DNA from: Macrostomum hystrix
Lineage: Eukaryota > Animalia > Platyhelminthes
Reading direction: 5' to 3'
Assembly (NCBI GenBank): GCA_950097015.1
Contig: CATNEN010000038.1
Coordinates: 6,324,001-6,388,000, forward strand
DNA: 64,000 bases
A model generated the notes under the pieces. The model made no database searches. It saw only the letters and a program-made list of their open reading frames with translations, and was not told the DNA's origin. The position numbers were made by a program, and so were the translations under genes. Within the stretch, counting starts at the first letter, position 1, and every line of letters begins with the position of its first letter. This document shows, piece after piece, positions 9,776 to 28,839 of the stretch.

Positions 9776-10699
9776 ATGGCCACAGCCAATCGAAGAAGCT
9801 CTGCGAAGTCTTTGTCGCTCTTTATCCTGCTGGCTGTGCAGTTTTTTTGCCTGCCGAAGAATGCGGTGCAATCAGCGGTTACTGGCGGCGACACGCCGTA
9901 TCAGTTCAAGGCCATTCAGGGCCGCCTGTGCATCAGCGCCGCCTACATCCAGCAGGACAGTCAGCCGACCGTCAGCAGGCTCGAGTGTGCGGCCCGCTGT
10001 GAAGCCAAGCCTCGCTGCCGAGCGTTTAGCCACGAAGCCGTCGGGCAGTGCCGCCACTTCGTGTTCGACGCCTGCAGCCGGGGCGTCCGGGACACCTGCG
10101 ACTGTCCGGCCGATGTGGGCCGGGTGTTTGTTCGCCGAGCGGCCGGCCTGACAGCAGGACGGCTGTGCCCGGACGACTATTACGATGGTGAGCTCCGTGG
10201 GGTCGGGAGAAAGCCCAACAGTTTAACCAGTTGCGGCAGCCCTGTCTCATTCCATTCCAAATCAGGCACTGTGCCGCGGGACCGCTGTGGTGTCCGCTAC
10301 CGCGTGCGGGCCAGCCAGGGCAACTGGTCTGTCGGCCGGGCCGCCTGCCAGGCGGAGGCCGGCGGAGTGGCCGTCATGTCCGACATTGGCAGCGCCGGCG
10401 AGCTCGACCTGGCCGTGTTGCTGGGCCAGGCCCTGGGCTCCAATTTCTACGTGGCCGGCCTGCAGACTTCGGGCAGCGCGGAGCCGGGCGCCGGCTGGCT
10501 GTGGGCCAACGGCTGTTCTGTTGGGACGGCCGTTGATCCCACTCTGTGGGCCGTCGGGCAGCCGACTGATGTCAGTGGCACTCGGAGCGCTACAGCAGTG
10601 TGGACAACCAGCACAGTGTTCCCCGGCCTGGTGGACACAGGCGTCAGCAACTCGGCGGTGACTGGAGCGCTCTGCCAGTGCCAGTCACCGTTTGAGTGA
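9776..10699 (+). CDS. Intronless secreted protein: PAN/apple-like domain plus divergent C-type lectin domain
   Basis: Signal peptide; SRLECAARCEAKPRCRAFS (PAN/apple-like); W..GRAAC....MSDI.S..E, FYVAG, W.WANG, WAVGQP and terminal ALCQC (CTLD-like); GC-rich codon usage. Confidence 0.8.
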   Translation: MATANRRSSAKSLSLFILLAVQFFCLPKNAVQSAVTGGDTPYQFKAIQGRLCISAAYIQQDSQPTVSRLECAARCEAKPRCRAFSHEAVGQCRHFVFDACSRGVRDTCDCPADVGRVFVRRAAGLTAGRLCPDDYYDGELRGVGRKPNSLTSCGSPVSFHSKSGTVPRDRCGVRYRVRASQGNWSVGRAACQAEAGGVAVMSDIGSAGELDLAVLLGQALGSNFYVAGLQTSGSAEPGAGWLWANGCSVGTAVDPTLWAVGQPTDVSGTRSATAVWTTSTVFPGLVDTGVSNSAVTGALCQCQSPFE

Positions 10700-13942: not shown

Positions 13943-14050
13943 GGGAGTCGTGGCTTTATGGTAAGAGCGTCCGACTCGCAACTTGATAGTCAGGGGTTCG
14001 AATCGTCTTTTAGCCAGACACTTAACTGTGCATTGTTTCAGTTCACCCAC
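13943..14050 (+). mobile_element. tRNA-derived SINE family A (truncated)
   Basis: A box tggctttatggt, B box ggttcgaatc, then cagacacttaactgtgcattgtttcagttcaccca core shared with the copies at 45006 and 58556. Confidence 0.75.
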
Positions 14051-14701
14051 TGAGCTCACCAATTGTTGGCTGATCATCTAATAGAATTGATGCATATGTA
14101 ATCAATTTCTTGGTAGCTATGCCACACGTTTTGATTCGGCTTGACACTAGTTTCGTCTCATTGCAAAGCGAATAACATTAGACTGATCTGAATTTATTCA
14201 AATTGACTTAAAGTAGACACAGCATTATCTTGTCTCGTATTTATAATAGTTGGCTAGTTTCTACTTCAACCTAAATTCTAGCTTAACAATCTTCGTAATC
14301 ATGAACTCCTTCCTTGCGCTTATTCATTTTTTCAGTACAGGTACAAATGCGAAACAGTTGAAATATTGGGAAAAATGCATTTAAGAATTTAACAGCCAGT
14401 TCCATAATTTTATAAACACTGGTAAAACAAATGCGAATTCAGATAGAAAAATTTATTGTTAAGCTTGGAATGAATAGATTTAAGCAAATTATAAAACTTG
14501 ATTATCCATTAAAAAGTTGAAATGTTTATCAATTTCATCAGTCGATCTCTACTGAGCACATGTAGTAGCATTTATCACCCAAGTGATTAGATTTCAGCTG
14601 AATCATCGAATCTGAAAATTGTCAGGTAAGTGGAACATGCAGCTAATGACTGGTAGGTACTTAATAAATGTGTACTATGTACCGTCATCTTAAGTGCACA
14701 A

Positions 14702-14769
14702 TCAGAGAGGGCAAGTTAGTCGACAGCTGGGTTGGTTACCATGGCGACGGGTAAACGAATAGTCATCAT
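14702..14769 (-). ncRNA. Box C/D snoRNA copy 1
   Basis: C box AUGAUGA, guide CGUUUACCCG, guide ACUUGCCCUC, D box CUGA. Confidence 0.85.
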
Positions 14770-14962
14770 AAAATATGAATCGCCTACAAAAGATAGCAGA
14801 AAGCAGATAGCAAATTAAAAATCGGTTACCTGAAAAGATGGACAGTGCCAATAGCAGCAGATTGACTATAGCGCAGCTGAAAACGGACATCAGAGCAAAT
14901 GCACTTATGCAGCAACAGTTTACTGAATACTTAAAATAATGATAACAGTATTAGATTAGATA

Positions 14963-15033
14963 TCAGGTTGGGTGAATTGGTCGTCATCTAGCTGGTTAGC
15001 AGCAATGGCGACGGGTAAACGGTAAGACATCAT
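14963..15033 (-). ncRNA. Box C/D snoRNA copy 2 (D guide replaced)
   Basis: AUGAUGU...CCGUUUACCCG...AUGACGA (C')...AAUUCACCCAAC-CUGA. Confidence 0.75.
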
Positions 15034-15334
15034 TTTGTCTCTGATAATTAGCACTTAGGGAGGAAGGAAAAGAAGAAAGGAAATTCCTGAGAATTAGGTG
15101 GCATTTACACTTACGCTTTAAGGAGTCACAAAAAAGCCAGCGAAATTCTAAAAAACAAGTTCAATAAAACAGTTAATTAAACTCTGTTTAAACGAAGGGA
15201 ATCAAATGGCTATCAAGGACTACTAGAAGAAGAAGGTTGGGACACTTTGTTATTGGAAAATAAAATAGTTAAAAGTTCCCATCTCCAAAGAAACAAAGCG
15301 ACCGGTCCTAATGTGTGCACTACTGGCTCACAGA

Positions 15335-15402
15335 TCAGAGATAAAAGATTAGTCGTCAACTGGATTGGTTACCATAACGACGGGTAAACGATTGGACATC
15401 AT
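15335..15402 (-). ncRNA. Box C/D snoRNA copy 3 (D guide degenerate)
   Basis: AUGAUGU...CGUUUACCCG...UUGACGA...AUCUUUUAUCU-CUGA. Confidence 0.75.
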
Positions 15403-15610
15403 ATGTTTACAGCTCATATATCTGTAGAAAAAACGGAAAAAATATATGACTGTTCTTTACCTGCTTTTAATGAGTAAGCCAGTCCAGTTGAAAGCAGGTA
15501 TTAAAATCAAATCTTGTTTCATTATCTACAAAGTTGAGAAAAATATATACTTTTAATATATAGAACTCAGAAATTGTCAGTTAAAGTTACATACGAGAAA
15601 TTACATAAAA

Positions 15611-15676
15611 TCAGAGAGGGCAAGTTAGTCGTCACGTGGTTGGTAACCATAGCGACGGGTAAACGATAGACATCAT
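15611..15676 (-). ncRNA. Box C/D snoRNA copy 4
   Basis: C box AUGAUGU, both guides, D box CUGA. Confidence 0.85.
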
Positions 15677-15859
15677 ACACGAACAATACTTGATTGTGAA
15701 GAATTGGAGAAAAAAGCATTGACAGCTTACAAATTTGCAGTTTTAAACCAGGCACAGATTGAGTTCCTCTGAACGAGACGTCTAAAATAAAGCGAGAATT
15801 GCTTTTCTATAAAACACATTTTTTAATTGCATGATTAACTATTAAGACTAATTTGATGA

Positions 15860-15925
15860 TCAGAGAGGGCAAGTTAGTCGTCAAGTGGTTGGTAACCATA
15901 GCGACGGGTAAACGATAGTCATCAT
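15860..15925 (-). ncRNA. Box C/D snoRNA copy 5
   Basis: C box AUGAUGA, both guides, D box CUGA. Confidence 0.85.
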
Positions 15926-16171
15926 ATGATTCTCGATTGTAATTTGAAGCAAAATAGGACATCCTATTTTTACAGCTGATAAATCTAAAAAAAACGGAAT
16001 AAATAAATGACTGCTCCTTACCTGCTTTTAATGAGTAAGCCAGTCCAGTTGAAAGCAGGTATTAAAATCAAATCTTGTTTCATTATCTACAAAGTTGAGA
16101 AAAATATATACTTTTAATATATAGAACTCAGAAATTTTCAGTTGAAGTTACATACGAGAAATTACATAAAA

Positions 16172-16237
16172 TCAGAGAGGGCAAGTTAGTCGTCACGTGG
16201 TTGGTAACCATAGCGACGGGTAAACGATAGACATCAT
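16172..16237 (-). ncRNA. Box C/D snoRNA copy 6
   Basis: Duplicate of copy 4, 561 bp away. Confidence 0.85.
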
Positions 16238-16420
16238 ACATGAACAATACTTGATTGTGAAGAATTGGAGAAAAAAGCATTGACAGCTTACAAATTTGCA
16301 GTTTTAAACCAGGCACAGATTGAGTTCCTCTGAACGAGACGTCTAAAATAAAGCGAGAATTGCTTTTCTATAAAACACATTTTTTAATTGCATGATTAAC
16401 TATTAAGACTAATTTGATGA

Positions 16421-16486
16421 TCAGAGAGGGCAAGTTAGTCGTCACGTGGTTGGAAACCATAGCGACGGGTAAACGATAGTCATCAT
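16421..16486 (-). ncRNA. Box C/D snoRNA copy 7
   Basis: Near-duplicate of copy 5, 561 bp away. Confidence 0.85.
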
Positions 16487-16624
16487 ATGATTCTCGATTT
16501 TATTTGAAGCGAAATAGGCATTTTTACAGCTGATAAATCTATAAAAAAAACGGAATAAATAAGTGACTGCTCTTTACCTGCTTTCAATAAGTAAGCTAAT
16601 CCAGTTGAAGCAGGTACTAAAATC

Positions 16625-19600
16625 ATTTCAAAGGTTAATTCAAGGTGCGAAATAAGCAATTTTTAATATTAATAAAAGAGTATCGGTGGTAATAAAACCA
16701 AAAGAGGAGAGAGGCCTACGACAACTTGGTGTCAGCGGTAAAGGATTGAAATCCAGCTAAAAGCACACAGTCAGTTAAAAGTTAAGATAACGGTATGGCC
16801 GCAGGAATCAATGATGCTATTGGCTTGTTAGCCGAAGAACTAAGAAATAGACTAGAATTAGGACCCATGAGACATGTAAGAATCCAAAAGTACACACCTA
16901 GCCAGGACATAAGAATTTGGCTTACAGCATTCGATCAGAGATGCGACAATGAAGGATTAGAACAGGACGAGCATAGGAAGAATGAGCTATTAGCTAACCT
17001 AGACCTTGCGACTGCATTTGCAGCCGTCCAACGTTTGAATTTGCCAGAAGAACTAACATACGAGGAGTTGAAGGAAAGACTTGTAGAAAGGTTTGGAAGA
17101 CTAGGAAGCTTAGCCGAGATTAGGGAGGAATTTAGAGGTAGGATACAAGGGAGGAATGAGCCAGTTGACTCATTCGCAGATGCCTTGATTGAGTTGTCCG
17201 CCCAGGCATTTCCCAATATGAATGCAGAACAAAGGGAGGAGGAGGTTGTAGAGCAGTTCATCAAAGGAGCGAGAATCCCCTCCGACACTAGGGAAAAGTT
17301 ACTATATGCACAGCCAGCCAGCCTGCAAGAGGCTAGGAGAATGCTGAGACGCATAGAAGCAGCGTGGCATATGTCGCACAAGAGTGGAATACGAGTCGTA
17401 AAAGACGAGCAATTCGACGAGGATCGGAATAAGAAGATGGAGGAGACCATCGAGAGGCAGAAATATGAAAGCAATAAGCAGAAGAAGCTAATTGAAGACC
17501 TGATTCAGGAAAGGAGGAAGGTTAGCCCCCAGATGCCGCTGGGGCTAACGCAATGGGTGCTGACGCAGATGGGTGCTGACGCAGATGGTGCTGACGCAAT
17601 GGGTGCTGACGCAATGGGTGCTGACGCAGATGGTGCTGACGCAATGGGTGCTGATACTCGATACTTCGGCTGCTTCTGTGTATTACACAATTTTGGAACA
17701 CCTATGACAGTTAGTATGATTGGCGAAGGCGTAAAAGCCAAAGAATTGACAGTCGAGATGGCTCCCACTCTAGTCACAATGCGAGAAGGTTCCGCTATAG
17801 TGGAAATAGTGAACAACAATTCAGTTGAGGTGAAGCTGTCTAAGTCAACATTGGTAGGCCTAGCCAAACCAGTGAAAGCAAGTGAGTTGAAGTATTTCGA
17901 AGCTGAAAAAGAAGTAGTCAGTCAACCTACCGGACGAGTCAACCAGACACAGACTGTGGAAGATGCGTGGATCCATGAGGTCAAGATTGGTCAAGATCTT
18001 ACCGATGATCAGAGAAAGTCAGTGATCGAATTGATGAAAGAGCATCGTGAGGCTTTTTCACAGAATGAGTTGGATATGGGTTTAACCCATCTGATCACAC
18101 ATGAGATCTCAATGAAGGATGAGACTCCCGTGAGGATCCCAACTAGGAGAATACCACCCCATCTTCAAAAGCAAGTCGACACACAGTTGGATGATATGTT
18201 GGCGAAAAATTTAATTAGGCCTTGTTATTCAACTTATTCTACTCCATTAGTCATTGTGCCGAAAAAGGACGGATCCATACGGATTGTGAGCGATTTTAGA
18301 GTGTTAAACTCGAAGGTGAACTATGTTCCGTATCCGCTTCCTAACATCCACCAGACTTTCACCTATTTATCAGGCAGTCAGTACTTTAGTAGTCTCGATT
18401 TGAATTCTGGTTATTGGCAGGTGCCGATAAAGGAAGAACACAAGTTCATGACCGCCTTCTCTACTCTAACCCGAGGACAGTTTGAGTAGGAGGTTATGGC
18501 ACAAGGTTTATCGAATGCCCCAGGAACATTCCAAAGGCTCATGAATCTTGTACTTTTAGGAATTCAGCATAAGTTTGCTATGTCGTATATAGACGACATA
18601 GTTACCTATTCGAAGAATTTTAATGACCACCTTTCCCATCTAAAGGAAGTATTCAAGAGACTAATAATCGCAGGATTGAAGCTAAGGCCAAAGAAATGTA
18701 ACCTTTTTCATAGAGAGTTAAAGTACTTAGGACATGTGATCAGTACGGAAGGTATTCGTACAGATGAGACGAAGATAGAAGCGATTAAGACCTGGCCGAA
18801 GCCAAAAGATGTGAAGGAGCTACGCAGTTTCCTTGGCCTATGTAATTACTATAGCCGCTTCATTAGAAATTATGCAGAAGCTGCCCATCCCCTTTTCCAG
18901 CTAACAAGGAAAGGAATTAAGAACTTTCAAGAGAGATGGAGCAAGGAGCATGACGAAGCGTTTGAGTCGCTAAAGAACCGGATGATGTCCACTGAAGTAT
19001 TAGCGTATCCCGAATTTGTGGATGACAAGAAGGTGAAGATGGTATTGGATACCGATGCAAGTGATAGCCGTATTGGCGCTGTACTTAGCCAGATCCAATC
19101 AGATGGCATAGAGAGACTCATAGCTTATTTCAGCCGAGCTATGAAAGAGTCGGAAAAACGCTACCCTATCACTAGAAAAGAACTCTTAGCCCTAGTGGAT
19201 GCCATGAGGCATTTCCGTTTCTACCTGTTAGGCAAGAAGTTTTTGGCCAGAACGGATCATAAGGCAATAATTTGGCTGTTAAGGCAAACAGAAGCTCAAG
19301 GAATTCTTGGTCGGTGGGTCGAGCGCCTAAACGAATTCTCGTTCGATATAGAACACAGAAGCGGTGCAAAGAACCAGAACGCTGACAGTCTGTCAAGAAG
19401 ACCAGCTGATGTCCCTGAAGCAGAGCAGAGCAGCCTTTGTACCAGCAGCCACAGCCGCAGCCGTCGCAGCAGCAGCAGCCCCAGCCATCGCAGCAACAGC
19501 CGCCACAGCAGCAGCCGCAGTCGTCGCAACAGCAGCAGCAGCCTTTGTACCAGCAGCCACAGCCGCAGCTATCGCAGCAGTCACAACAGCATCCGTCGCC

Positions 19601-20873
19601 ACAGCCGATGGAAGATGAGGACGATGTCAGCATGGAATCCGCGGAGAATCAAGAATTCGCCCGAACAATGGCGGAGATCCCACATGCTCAGCACGAGCAT
19701 TTCAAACGGCTGATTCGGCATATGAAAGGCTACATTCTGGACGCTGGGCTATTCAACAACGACCGGCGGTACCCACAGCGAGCTGCAATTTACTCCGTCA
19801 TGCGAGTGCTATGCGAGAAGTTCTTAAGGGCGCACTGTATAACTGCCTGGAAGAGAGCTGTGAGTATGCGCGGAAGGTTATTAATCGCAGCCCACTGTCC
19901 GTAAATCGCATCCCTCTCAACATTGAGTTGAGATGGATGGCCAGCACCGTAGGATGGCCCCGCAACGAGAGACTGACCGAGGAGTGCTACTTTTCTTAAA
20001 GGACAATTAAACCGTTTTACTATAACTTTTGTCACCCGTTTTATTTTGTGTGTATGCTATTTTTGCTACCCGTTTTATTTTGTGTATGCTATTGTTACTA
20101 TAAATTTTGTCACGCGTTGTATTTTTCTTATTCCAAAATTTATGTAGGGGAAGCCAGTTGAGGCAGGCCCAAATTTACCGTAGATTTATAATTTGAATTC
20201 CCGCCAAATGCTTTTCCTCAATTTTATATTTTGGTTTGTTTTAATGTGTTTCACCACCCGCCTCAAATTTTGCTATAAATATAGGCGCAGTTTAGCCCAA
20301 AAAGCCCCAACCGGTGCCCCGTGCCCAGTTCGGAGTGCAACAAAGGAGAATAAATCTCAAAGTGTTTGAATTCAATTATTTTAGAGAGAAGGAGAAAAGC
20401 AGGTCTGTGATAATACACAAGTCGGTGAACATTCGAAAGAATAAAGAAGGAGATAGTTATAAAAAGCAGTAGAGTGTAAAACTAAAGAGCAGAGGGTAAA
20501 ATCCCGATTGGTGGAATAGCACTATGTGCAAAGTTGGGCAACTTCAGTCCATTTGGAAGCCTTGAAGACTGGGAACAAACCAGAAAGCCAGATAGTTTAT
20601 AAGTAAGGAGAGGAAGAAGTGTCTTGCCGCTCGGACACTCGTGCGAACGCTACCAAATTTTGGAAGGAAAGCAGCCTATCTGGCCAAGTTAAGCAATATA
20701 TGCATATGAAATAAAAGGGTACATAGTTAACCTATGAGGTATAATTATGTCATAGACAAAGGAATCTAAGAGTTATTTCAAAGGTTAGTTCAAGGTGCGA
20801 ATAGAGCAATTTTTAATATTAATAAAAGAGTATCGGTGGTAATAAAACCAAAAGAGGAGAGAGGCCTACGACA
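16625..20873 (+). mobile_element. Decayed Ty3/Gypsy LTR retrotransposon (5' LTR truncated, integrase missing)
   Basis: Direct repeat 16625-16723 / 20775-20873 ending in CA; PBS-like tggtgtcagcgg at 16727; gag-like and RT-RNase H ORFs between the repeats. Confidence 0.92.
16795..19410 (+). pseudogene. Gypsy gag-pol (gag, RT, RNase H), interrupted
   Basis: PLVIVPKKDGSIR, LDLNSGYWQV, GLSNAPGTFQRLM, YIDD, LDTDAS, RTDHKAI, NADSLSR. In-frame TAG at 18487 where Trp is expected. No recognisable protease or integrase. Confidence 0.9.
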
Positions 20874-21059
20874 ATCATACATGAACAATACTTGATTGTG
20901 AAGAATTGGAGAAAAAAGCATTGACAGCTTACAAATTTGCAGTTTTAAACCAGGCACAGATTGAGTTCCTCTGAACGAGACGTCTAAAAAAACGAGAATT
21001 ATTTTTCTATAAAACACATTTTTTAATTGCATGATTAACTATTAAGACTAATTTGATGA

Positions 21060-21125
21060 TCAGAGAGGGCAAGTTAGTCGTCACGTGGTTGGTAACCATA
21101 GCGACGGGTAAACGATAGTCATCAT
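21060..21125 (-). ncRNA. Box C/D snoRNA copy 8
   Basis: C box AUGAUGA, both guides, D box CUGA. Confidence 0.85.
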
Positions 21126-21372
21126 ATGATTCTCGATTGTAATTTGAAGCAAAATAGGACATCCTATTTTTACAGCTGATAAATCTAAAAAAAAACGGAA
21201 TAAATAAATGACTGCTCCTTACCTGCTTTTAATGAGTAAGCCAGTCCAGTTGAAAGCAGGTATTAAAATCAAATCTTGTTTCATTATCTACAAAGTTGAG
21301 AAAAATATATACTTTTAATATATAGAACTCAGAAATTTTCAGTTGAAGTTACATACGAGAAATTACATAAAA

Positions 21373-21438
21373 TCAGAGAGGGCAAGTTAGTCGTCACGTG
21401 GTTGGTAACCATAGCGACGGGTAAACGATAGACATCAT
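21373..21438 (-). ncRNA. Box C/D snoRNA copy 9
   Basis: C box AUGAUGU, both guides, D box CUGA. Confidence 0.85.
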
Positions 21439-21635
21439 ATGATTCTCGATTGTATTTGAAGCGAAATATCAGGGCGTTAGAGCCAATATTAAATGCTTAC
21501 CGTTCTGCATTATAGTTCTAAACCGGGAAAATTTTCAGTTCCCAATGAACCGTCTAAAATACAAAGCAAAAGGCTTTTCTATACAGCACAATAATTTATT
21601 TTATTCACTTCTAAATAATCAAAGCAAACAAATTT

Positions 21636-21705
21636 TCAGAGAGGGCAAGTTAGTCGACAGCTGGCTATTTTGTAACCATAGCGCAGGGTAAACGATAGTC
21701 ATCAT
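21636..21705 (-). ncRNA. Box C/D snoRNA copy 10
   Basis: C box AUGAUGA, CGUUUACCC, ACUUGCCCUC, CUGA. Confidence 0.85.
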
Positions 21706-21912
21706 ATTTTTTAATTGTATCGATATAAGCTATGATAATAAAACAACTGACGCACCCGAAAGTCTGCAGTACGTGAACAATTCACAGGAAAATAACTTGG
21801 CAGATAAAAGTACAGATGATTTGCCACTAAAATGTTGTTGCGAGAGATAGTAAAATTTAAGTCTGTTGGACCTTTGCATGTTTACTATAAAAAACAAAAA
21901 ATCAAGGAAAGA

Positions 21913-21983
21913 TCAGAGAGGGCAAGTTAGTCGTCAGCTGGCTAGTTTGTATCCATAGCGACGGGTAAACGATAGTACATCAT
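21913..21983 (-). ncRNA. Box C/D snoRNA copy 11
   Basis: C box AUGAUGU, both guides, C' CUGACGA, D box CUGA. Confidence 0.85.
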
Positions 21984-22151
21984 AGTACAGCAATAGTTGA
22001 AATTGCGCAGGTAACACAAACTCACCTGACAAAATGTATGTTAGGTACACCTGTATTATTCGGAAATTTCAACTGGGTGTTTAATCTCCAGTACCGAATA
22101 TTTCTGGAAAGTAAAGAACATAACGCGTTTGCAATATTTTATTCGTCATCA

Positions 22152-22221
22152 TCAGAGAGAGTAAGTTAGTCGACATTTGGTTAGTTTGTAACCATAGCAA
22201 CGGGTAAACGATAGGCATCAT
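22152..22221 (-). ncRNA. Box C/D snoRNA copy 12 (two changes in D guide)
   Basis: AUGAUGC...CGUUUACCCG...ACUUACUCUCU-CUGA. Confidence 0.75.
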
Positions 22222-22394
22222 CAAATAGCTTGGTTATTGCCAAGAATACCGAACACTCACAGTCAGCGGTAACACTGTAGCACCTGGATTCCGTAGATAT
22301 TCACGAAGGCTGAAATTTAAAACACACGATATATCTTTCACCCATTCGCAATCACGGCACGGCAATCAGTAGTTATAAAACCTTAAAATGAGTA

Positions 22395-22464
22395 TCAGAG
22401 AGGGCAAGTAAGTCGTCAGTTGGTTGAAAAGCCATAACGACGGGTAAACGATAGTGGACATCAT
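22395..22464 (-). ncRNA. Box C/D snoRNA copy 13
   Basis: C box AUGAUGU, both guides, C' CUGACGA, D box CUGA. Confidence 0.85.
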
Positions 22465-23099
22465 TTTTATGATAGGCTGAGAAATAAACCTTAATGATCT
22501 CAAATACCTAGCTAGTCTGAATACATATTTATAGAATGTAACGAACGATAGAACGAACGCAGAGATGAAACTTCTTGTCACACAAGTGTGCCAACTGACC
22601 ATTTATTTCGCGTACAAACAGAAACAGCAATGAAACTCAAGTTATTATTAGCTACTACTATTAGTAATAGATAAGCACAATTGGAATTACAAACACGAAT
22701 TGTTGAGAAATAATTAGTGTGTTAGTTAGTAGGCAAAGTCGGGCATTTCATTGGCTTTGACAAAGAGATAAGCACGCGTGATTGGAAATATGTGAGCAAT
22801 ATATGAGACAATGAGTATACTCAAATCTTAGTTCATGATCCATAATAACTGGGGGCAATTACAGGGACACTTATAAATACAATAATAGATTCACAACAAA
22901 TGCAAGCAATACATTAACAGCAGGTAAACATGCCTATTACGGTTGGCAAGGAATTACCCACTTTCTAGTTTTGAGAAGGATTAATGAAACAATAAAGTTT
23001 TGCATAATCTTGCTTGTAAAAAACTAAATATTAAATATCTGACGTAGCTACTAATGCAAGTAGTACGGCGAGAGAATGAAATAAAGAAGCCATTTAAGG

Positions 23100-28839
<5,740 letters not shown>

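Follow-up and report, generated by a model that had tools for sequence, protein, structure and literature searches.

A tandem array of predicted dual-guide box C/D snoRNA genes in the putative introns of a non-coding host gene in the flatworm Macrostomum hystrix

Introduction

The described box C/D small nucleolar RNAs (snoRNAs) closest to those predicted here, in a tandem array within a 64,000-nucleotide stretch of the Macrostomum hystrix genome, are SNORD103A/B together with SNORD85 (RF00188), which target Gm601 of human 18S ribosomal RNA (rRNA), and SNORD87, which targets Gm3744 of 28S rRNA in the newer numbering (PMC11550049) and G3723 in the older one (PMC3349704). Gm601 belongs to a series of human 18S sites that also includes Am590, Um627 and Gm644, and the SNORD87 site stands likewise beside Am3760, Am3785, Gm3792 and Cm3808 (PMC11550049). 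Lower vertebrates have several copies of SNORD87, the number of genes being 4 in Xenopus and zebrafish (PMC3349704). The other points of reference are the multi-intron non-coding host genes of vertebrates (GAS5/UHG/SNHG) and Drosophila (Uhg), and the mammalian SNORD115 and SNORD116 clusters. In Drosophila, neighbouring introns are known to carry paralogous "isoform" snoRNAs, and nuclease-cut polycistronic snoRNA precursors are known from plants, yeast clusters and trypanosomatids.

Flatworm snoRNAs and flatworm rRNA modification are almost undescribed. Our literature search returned nothing specific on snoRNAs of Macrostomum or of flatworms, and a paper mapping 2'-O-methylated nucleotides (Nm) in Drosophila does not mention the two target sites by their human names. 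Here we analyze positions 6,324,001 to 6,388,000 (forward strand) of contig CATNEN010000038.1 of GenBank assembly GCA_950097015.1, hereafter the window, with coordinates counted from its first nucleotide. It probably contains 13 paralogous box C/D snoRNA genes, whose two guides would be directed at universally conserved rRNA sites, and one destroyed copy, lying in the introns of a spliced non-coding host gene.

Results

Thirteen copies of one unit

A direct-repeat search of positions 14000–23500 recovered the unit families. Between 14702 and 22464 the minus strand holds 13 units in the same orientation, each measuring 66–71 nucleotides (nt) from C box to D box (c1 to c13, Table 1). The 15-mer GCGACGGGTAAACGA, searched on the plus strand with up to 3 mismatches, matched 13 times in the window, on that single strand, when 0.68 matches were expected from shuffles; the 21-mer comprising the D box and the 18S guide occurred 11 times (0 expected). 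Start-to-start spacings from c1 to c13 are 264, 369, 275, 249, 312, 249, 4639, 313, 267, 277, 239 and 240 base pairs (bp), a range of 239–369 bp apart from the single gap of 4639 bp. These values bear out the first-pass annotation of the window, which had described a 66–71-nt unit recurring 13 times, mostly 240–370 bp apart. Its proposal that one dual-guide snoRNA was amplified to at least 13 copies is likewise supported.

Conservation is limited to the boxes and guides of the predicted RNA

Read on the minus strand, the unit consists of a C box, a guide matching 28S rRNA, a degenerate D' position, a C' box, a guide matching 18S rRNA and a D box. All 13 copies parse in the same way: AUGAUGN, 4–7 nt, the 28S guide core CGUUUACCC, 2 nt, one of CGCU, CGCC, CGUU or UGCU at the D' position, 15–19 nt, the C' box (UGACGA or UGUCGA), 14 nt, and CUGA. 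The hexamer AUGAUG of the C box is invariant (13/13), its seventh base being A in 5 copies, U in 7 and C in 1, and so is the D box CUGA at the 3' end (13/13). The C' box is clear in every copy, as NUGACGA or NUGUCGA, and the interval from it to the D box is always exactly 14 nt. The 28S guide always stands at the same distance from the D' position but at a variable one (4–7 nt) from the C box. The 2 nt after CGUUUACCC are GU in 12 copies and UG in c10, and the variable 15–19-nt segment before C' forms a weak hairpin (-1.3 to -4.6 kcal/mol). The minus-strand reading AUGAUG(A/U/C)..CGUUUACCC(GU)CG..NUG(A/U)CGA..ACUUGCCCUCU-CUGA is correct. The anatomy given in the first-pass annotation left out the D' position.

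The alignment columns without variation are those of the C, C' and D boxes and of the two antisense elements. When the comparison is restricted to nine non-redundant copies, mean pairwise identity inside the unit is 82%, as against 56.5% and 53.5% in the two 40-nt flanks and 52% for shuffled 40-mers, in agreement with the earlier statement that conservation is confined to boxes and guides. Conservation therefore ends at the predicted RNA ends, which points to selection on an RNA product and not to a DNA satellite.

Both guides match conserved sites in the worm's own rRNAs

The ribosomal DNA (rDNA) unit of M. hystrix (C15:10300-20200) was annotated with Rfam, giving an 18S of 1813 nt, a 28S of 3757 nt and a 5.8S. 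The rDNA unit has a period of ~11.6 kilobases (kb), and rDNA copies were seen on contigs C15, C17 and C42. Positions 556-566 of this 18S (GGAGGGCAAGU) pair with the 18S guide ACUUGCCCUCU over 11 bp, of which 10 are Watson-Crick and 1 is G-U, and in 10 of the 13 copies 18S G560 stands opposite the nucleotide five positions upstream of box D. The 28S guide CGUUUACCCGU pairs with 28S 2559-2570 over 12 bp (10 Watson-Crick pairs and 2 terminal G-U pairs), with G2563 inside the duplex. The offsets between the human sites (PMC11550049) were compared with the base pattern of the worm rRNAs in these invariant stretches, and the unique fit equated 18S G560 with Gm601; the same method gave 28S G2563 as the unique fit for the human SNORD87 site. 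These results agree with the earlier assignments, by the D+5 rule, of the 18S guide to the G equivalent to Gm601 and of the 28S guide to the SNORD87 region, and they show that the host rRNAs carry both complementary segments. As predicted from pairing, the D guide points exactly at the worm's 18S G560, the equivalent of human Gm601.

The nucleotide addressed by the 28S guide is less certain, because the D' position has no canonical box. Two D' candidates are present, CGYY, which would direct methylation to G2563, and YYAU, which would direct it to G2561. We regard G2563 as the somewhat more probable target, on condition that CGYY acts as a degenerate D'; otherwise, if YYAU serves as D', the predicted target is G2561. 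G2563 is favoured since the CGYY reading reproduces a conserved site and since it places the weak hairpin symmetrically between D' and C'. In addition, under the YYAU reading the change from GU to UG in c10 would put position 5 at the edge of the duplex.

The 18S guide varies while the 28S guide core does not

Ten copies have an intact 18S guide, c10 being one of them, with an altered 3' end of its 28S guide. In c12, two transitions leave the 18S guide with one mismatch and one wobble pair. In c2 and c3 the 18S guide is lost and the D guides are very different; when other rRNA targets were sought for them, the best pairings spanned only 9–10 bp and included a mismatch or many G-U pairs. All 13 copies, including those with a decayed D guide, have the same 28S guide core (9/9 invariant). 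In the edge copies c2, c3 and c12 the 18S guide would be undergoing loss or change, with the 28S guide retained.

The unit is confined to this locus

In the 220-Mb assembly, BLAST with one unit gave 12 matches, all at the array, and a sequence-only covariance model built from the 13 copies recovered all of them there, at 56–82 bits. The sequence ACTTGCCCTCNCTGA was found solely at the array when no mismatch was allowed, and all 13 occurrences of the pattern TGATG-N3-9-CGTTTACCC lie there. Dispersal of the unit as a transposon fragment, which the first-pass annotation had named as a possible objection, is ruled out by these searches. The dual-guide pattern had 0 matches in a metagenome scan.

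Several leads were dropped. A covariance-model match at C8:2494916 (E=0.34) was coding-like noise. One-mismatch matches to the 18S guide plus D box came mostly from a dispersed repeat, AATTGCCCTCTCTGA, that is unrelated to the array; this 15-mer, which accounts for most of the 333 such matches, is found on both strands and many contigs and resembles the 18S guide and D box by chance. Matches to CGTTTACCCNNCTGA were not commoner than those to a reversed control, and three of the four exact ones had no C box. The fourth exact place, on the minus strand of C25:1279520-1279870, holds ~2.2 tandem copies of an 89-nt unit with two antisense matches to 28S, one of 18 nt without mismatch (2606-2623) and one of 23 nt with one G-U pair (2561-2583). 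The 23-nt match ends two bases before CTGA, which is the SNORD87 register and would target G2563. This unit has no clear C box and could be a snoRNA of the SNORD87 type or else a piece of rDNA in inverted orientation.

Splice signals in the spacers point to an intronic location

The spacers had been described as largely unrelated, which is not borne out. From c4 to c9, units and spacers together make up a higher-order repeat of two units and 561 bp, with 83-100% identity, and the spacer between c10 and c9 is a diverged relative of the c4–c9 spacers. On the minus strand, every spacer contains a polypyrimidine-AG acceptor followed, 47–129 nt further on, by a GTRAG-like donor. When scored with a generic splice matrix, not trained on the genome under study, the best acceptor and donor pair in the sense orientation exceeds the best antisense pair in 12/12 spacers, of which about 9 are independent. 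A stricter pattern (GT[AG]AG with a 10/14 pyrimidine tract) missed five spacers and was replaced by this matrix. In most spacers, including ones unrelated in sequence, the acceptor lies 76–89 nt past the D box. Hirose and Steitz reportedly described, in 2001, a preferred position of intronic box C/D snoRNAs relative to the 3' splice site, and the observed distance matches the position that favours their processing, which supports a host gene.

The signals define one predicted micro-exon per spacer, between 14830 and 22309, with lengths of 47–129 nt. Checked one at a time, two of them have stops in every frame. No shared promoter-like sequence was found upstream of the units, the flanks of the non-redundant copies being at random identity. 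Judging from these signals, each copy most likely occupies its own intron in a host gene without coding capacity.

A retroelement has inserted into one predicted intron

The first-pass annotation had placed a Gypsy insertion in the array, and the 4.2-kb gap indeed contains gag, reverse transcriptase (RT) and RNase H open reading frames (ORFs) between direct repeats of 100 nt. On the plus strand the gag match is weak, and RT is interrupted by a stop that separates ORF 16795-18489 from ORF 18496-19713; no integrase-sized ORF was found within 16625-20874. By these sequence features, the insertion is a defective Ty3/Gypsy-like long terminal repeat (LTR) element, antisense to the array and inside a predicted intron. 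In the minus-strand reading, TGAT flanks the element on both sides, its upstream edge abuts a c4/c6-type flank followed by ATGAT (20878-20874), and the sequence resumes beyond its downstream edge in the middle of a "long-spacer" exon. The C-box remnant and the mid-exon resumption indicate that a 14th copy and half an exon were lost. Since the insertion c7 would lie in an intron of ~4.6 kb, yet it has kept 78 nt to its acceptor. Within the element, a 15-nt unit is repeated in tandem at 17523-17654, and a CAG/CAGCCG-rich coding repeat at 19429-19600 gave spurious Rfam matches to microRNA families and isrG.

Copy c9 is a mosaic (21373-21448), its upstream flank being of the "A-type" found at c5, c7 and c8 and its C-box variant and downstream flank of the "U-type" found at c4 and c6. 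Such a composition suggests that copies of the array have undergone unequal crossing-over or gene conversion.

Ends of the predicted host gene and its neighbours

A candidate terminal exon follows c1. At the other end, a gene for a DZF-domain protein of the ILF2/ILF3/ZFR type lies upstream of the array on the same strand and may be linked to it transcriptionally; 138 nt separate its AATAAA from c13. The host transcript may start at its own promoter or, operon-like, behind the DZF gene with c13 in the outron. Downstream of the array, on the plus strand, a 307-aa ORF (9776-10699) has a marginal match to the PAN domain (E=2e-4).

Table 1. Coordinates of the array copies and of associated features in the window. 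The micro-exons are predicted from splice signals in the sequence only.
Feature	Position	Strand	Remarks
c13	22395..22464	-	70 nt; first in transcription order; both guides intact; 69.8 bits in the array-built model
Predicted micro-exon	22261-22309	-	
c12	22152..22221	-	18S guide weakened (ACUUACUCUCU); 28S guide 3' end GUUG
Predicted micro-exon	22026-22103	-	
c11	21913..21983	-	71 nt; both guides intact
Predicted micro-exon	21756-21884	-	or 21756-21826, with another acceptor
c10	21636..21705	-	18S guide intact; GU to UG in the 28S guide directly after CCC
Predicted micro-exon	21501-21553	-	stops in all three frames
c9	21373..21438	-	66 nt; higher-order repeat member
Predicted micro-exon	21223-21287	-	
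c8	21060..21125	-	66 nt; higher-order repeat member
Predicted micro-exon	20933-20983	-	
Remnant of 14th copy	20874..20878	-	ATGAT of the C box, preceded by c4/c6-type upstream flank; cut by the retroelement terminal repeat
Defective LTR retroelement	16625..20874	+	100-nt terminal direct repeats 16625-16724 and 20775-20874, 96% identity
c7	16421..16486	-	higher-order repeat member
Predicted micro-exon	16292-16342	-	
c6	16172..16237	-	higher-order repeat member
Predicted micro-exon	16022-16086	-	
c5	15860..15925	-	higher-order repeat member
Predicted micro-exon	15731-15781	-	
c4	15611..15676	-	higher-order repeat member
Predicted micro-exon	15461-15525	-	
c3	15335..15402	-	28S guide intact; D guide diverged (CUAAUCUUUUAUCU), without convincing rRNA target
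Predicted micro-exon	15115-15219	-	acceptor ambiguous; stops in all three frames
c2	14963..15033	-	28S guide intact; D guide diverged (CCAAUUCACCCAAC), without convincing rRNA target
Predicted micro-exon	14830-14876	-	
c1	14702..14769	-	68 nt; last in transcription order; both guides intact
Candidate terminal exon	14452..14611	-	acceptor TTTTCAG 90 nt after the c1 D box; AATAAA 14457-14452
DZF-domain protein gene	22602..26246	-	DZF_N 25764-26246; DZF_C 23100-23555; stop 23100-23102; AATAAA 22607-22602

Discussion

The reading that we favour is that the array encodes functional guide snoRNAs released by splicing. Each copy would yield a mature RNA of ~66–71 nt, a size that fits the ~60–100 nt of stable box C/D snoRNAs, which are bound by fibrillarin, Nop56, Nop58 and Snu13. 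The 18S guide would place the methyltransferase on G560, the human Gm601 equivalent, and the 28S guide would direct methylation most likely to G2563, equivalent to the human SNORD87 site. The snoRNAs would be freed from the introns of one spliced non-coding transcript, one per intron and usually ~76–89 nt before the 3' splice site. The array itself would have grown by tandem duplication of whole exon-intron-snoRNA units, the 561-bp two-unit repeat of c4–c9 being the latest step; the defective LTR retroelement would have inserted later into one intron, at the cost of one copy.

Several observations weigh against this reading, and most of them also bear on the alternative of a tandem repeat without function, or of snoRNA pseudogenes that no longer form working ribonucleoproteins. 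No canonical D' box was found in any of the 13 copies, none of the D' candidates having a GA dinucleotide, and no conserved terminal stem flanks the C and D boxes (0–3 adjacent pairs); such a stem is not universal among intronic snoRNAs. The seventh base of the C box is U in seven copies and C in one. No Rfam family reaches its threshold: of the two families with which the first-pass annotation had proposed to check the units, SNORD103, the best, scored 13.8 bits against a gathering threshold of 45, and SNORD87 gave no match even at E<=10 in a 96-nt stretch. At gathering thresholds the whole window had 0 matches, and a search of 14000-23500 at E<=10 returned no snoRNA family, only low-complexity matches to the CAG-rich retroelement region. 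Complementarity to rRNA is only moderately significant, 5–6% of shuffled guides reaching an equal duplex score somewhere in the rRNAs, and the 18S guide also pairs with 28S GGGGGGCAAGU (11 bp, 2 G-U pairs) with position 5 at G1933. This 28S match adjoins the conserved GCGGUAACGC and may be a second target or due to chance. An array of pseudogenes is nevertheless extremely improbable, given the sharp fall in identity among old copies, from 82% within the unit to the random level in the flanks, the coincidence of the invariant columns with boxes and guides, a D guide that points at a nucleotide homologous to a known conserved methylation, and a 28S guide that stays invariant where the D guide decays.

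The remaining alternatives accept the snoRNAs as real and concern their production. The last of the unfavourable observations is that no good donor was found upstream of c13, the best one after the DZF AATAAA being GTATTT at 22507 (score 3.6), which stands only 26 nt after TATAAA at 22533. No convincing 5' splice site precedes c13, and this TATAAA is too close to the sole nearby donor. The array, on the same strand and only 138 nt from the AATAAA (22607-22602), might have no promoter of its own and be transcribed as a downstream extension of the DZF gene, either in a spliced-leader operon or as a long intron-rich 3' untranslated region, with c13 in an outron or intercistronic segment and not in a cis-spliced intron. 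As in the cis introns, the distance from the c13 D box to the next good acceptor is 85 nt. We consider this arrangement unlikely, as the AATAAA implies that the DZF messenger RNA (mRNA) ends before the array, and thirteen introns past the stop codon would make that mRNA a target of decay. It is very unlikely that the snoRNAs are released other than by splicing, through independent transcription or nuclease cutting of an unspliced polycistronic precursor. Several predicted donors are weak (TTT/GTAAGC scores 3.9, and GTGCGT is also used) and the matrix that scored them is a generic one, but the units share no promoter element, their upstream flanks being at random identity, sense splice signals outscore antisense ones in all 12 spacers, and the acceptors stand at a regular 76–89 nt from box D even in spacers unrelated in sequence. 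A more elaborate proposal, which we hold to be quite unlikely, is that the locus is the sole genomic source of both guides, a birth-and-death array that unequal crossing-over of a two-unit repeat actively expands and homogenises, with edge copies shedding or re-targeting their 18S guide and c13 arising from outron or intercistronic RNA of a DZF spliced-leader operon; if true, snoRNA production would be coupled to trans-splicing.

If splicing-released guide snoRNAs are indeed encoded here, the locus makes two precise predictions of conserved 2'-O-methylations, at 18S G560 and at 28S G2563 or G2561. A guide without a recognisable D' box would also provide a natural test of what sets the methylation ruler at a degenerate C'/D'. 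The growth of snoRNA dosage by tandem exon-intron duplication can be seen directly, copies of different ages adjoining one another. The gene type is already well known, so that the value of the locus is descriptive and not conceptual.

Comparison with known snoRNAs and host genes

The unit shares with SNORD103A/B and SNORD85 an identical ACUUGCCCUC-N-CUGA in the same register and directed at the same target nucleotide (PMC11550049). The element lies between C and D' in SNORD103, whereas it lies between C' and D in the array unit, and nothing outside the guide and box segment aligns, the remainder of the RNA being unrelated; the partner guide is different as well. By sequence, the array unit is therefore a predicted functional analogue of SNORD103 and not a demonstrable member of its family. 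The likeness to SNORD87 lies in the core CGUUUACCC, which pairs with the same 28S segment and includes the homologous G2563 in the duplex. SNORD87 is a single-guide RNA, unlike the dual-guide array unit, which would join the SNORD103/85 target and the SNORD87 target region in one RNA. It carries a canonical CUGA two nt after CCC, where the array units have CGCU, CGCC, CGUU or UGCU.

The first-pass annotation had likened the array to the SNORD115 and SNORD116 clusters. In these clusters one box C/D snoRNA is indeed repeated in tandem many times, and every copy occupies an intron of a non-coding exon-intron unit that recurs with it. However, they are orphans without rRNA targets, imprinted and brain-specific, with ~30-50 copies (PMC3349704), whereas the array guides match conserved rRNA sites and nothing suggests imprinting here. 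The resemblance in tandem repetition of one species thus stands, but the comparison is a loose one, and host genes of the GAS5/UHG and Drosophila Uhg kind are closer. Like them, the predicted host has short exons without reading frame, one box C/D snoRNA per intron, a fixed distance to the 3' splice site and rRNA-targeting guides. It differs from the classical host genes, which carry mostly different snoRNAs, in having one species in all 13 predicted introns and in still expanding, as the 561-bp two-unit repeat. This closer match to known multi-intron host genes lowers the novelty claimed at first, and the locus represents a known type of gene, in a large but otherwise ordinary form.

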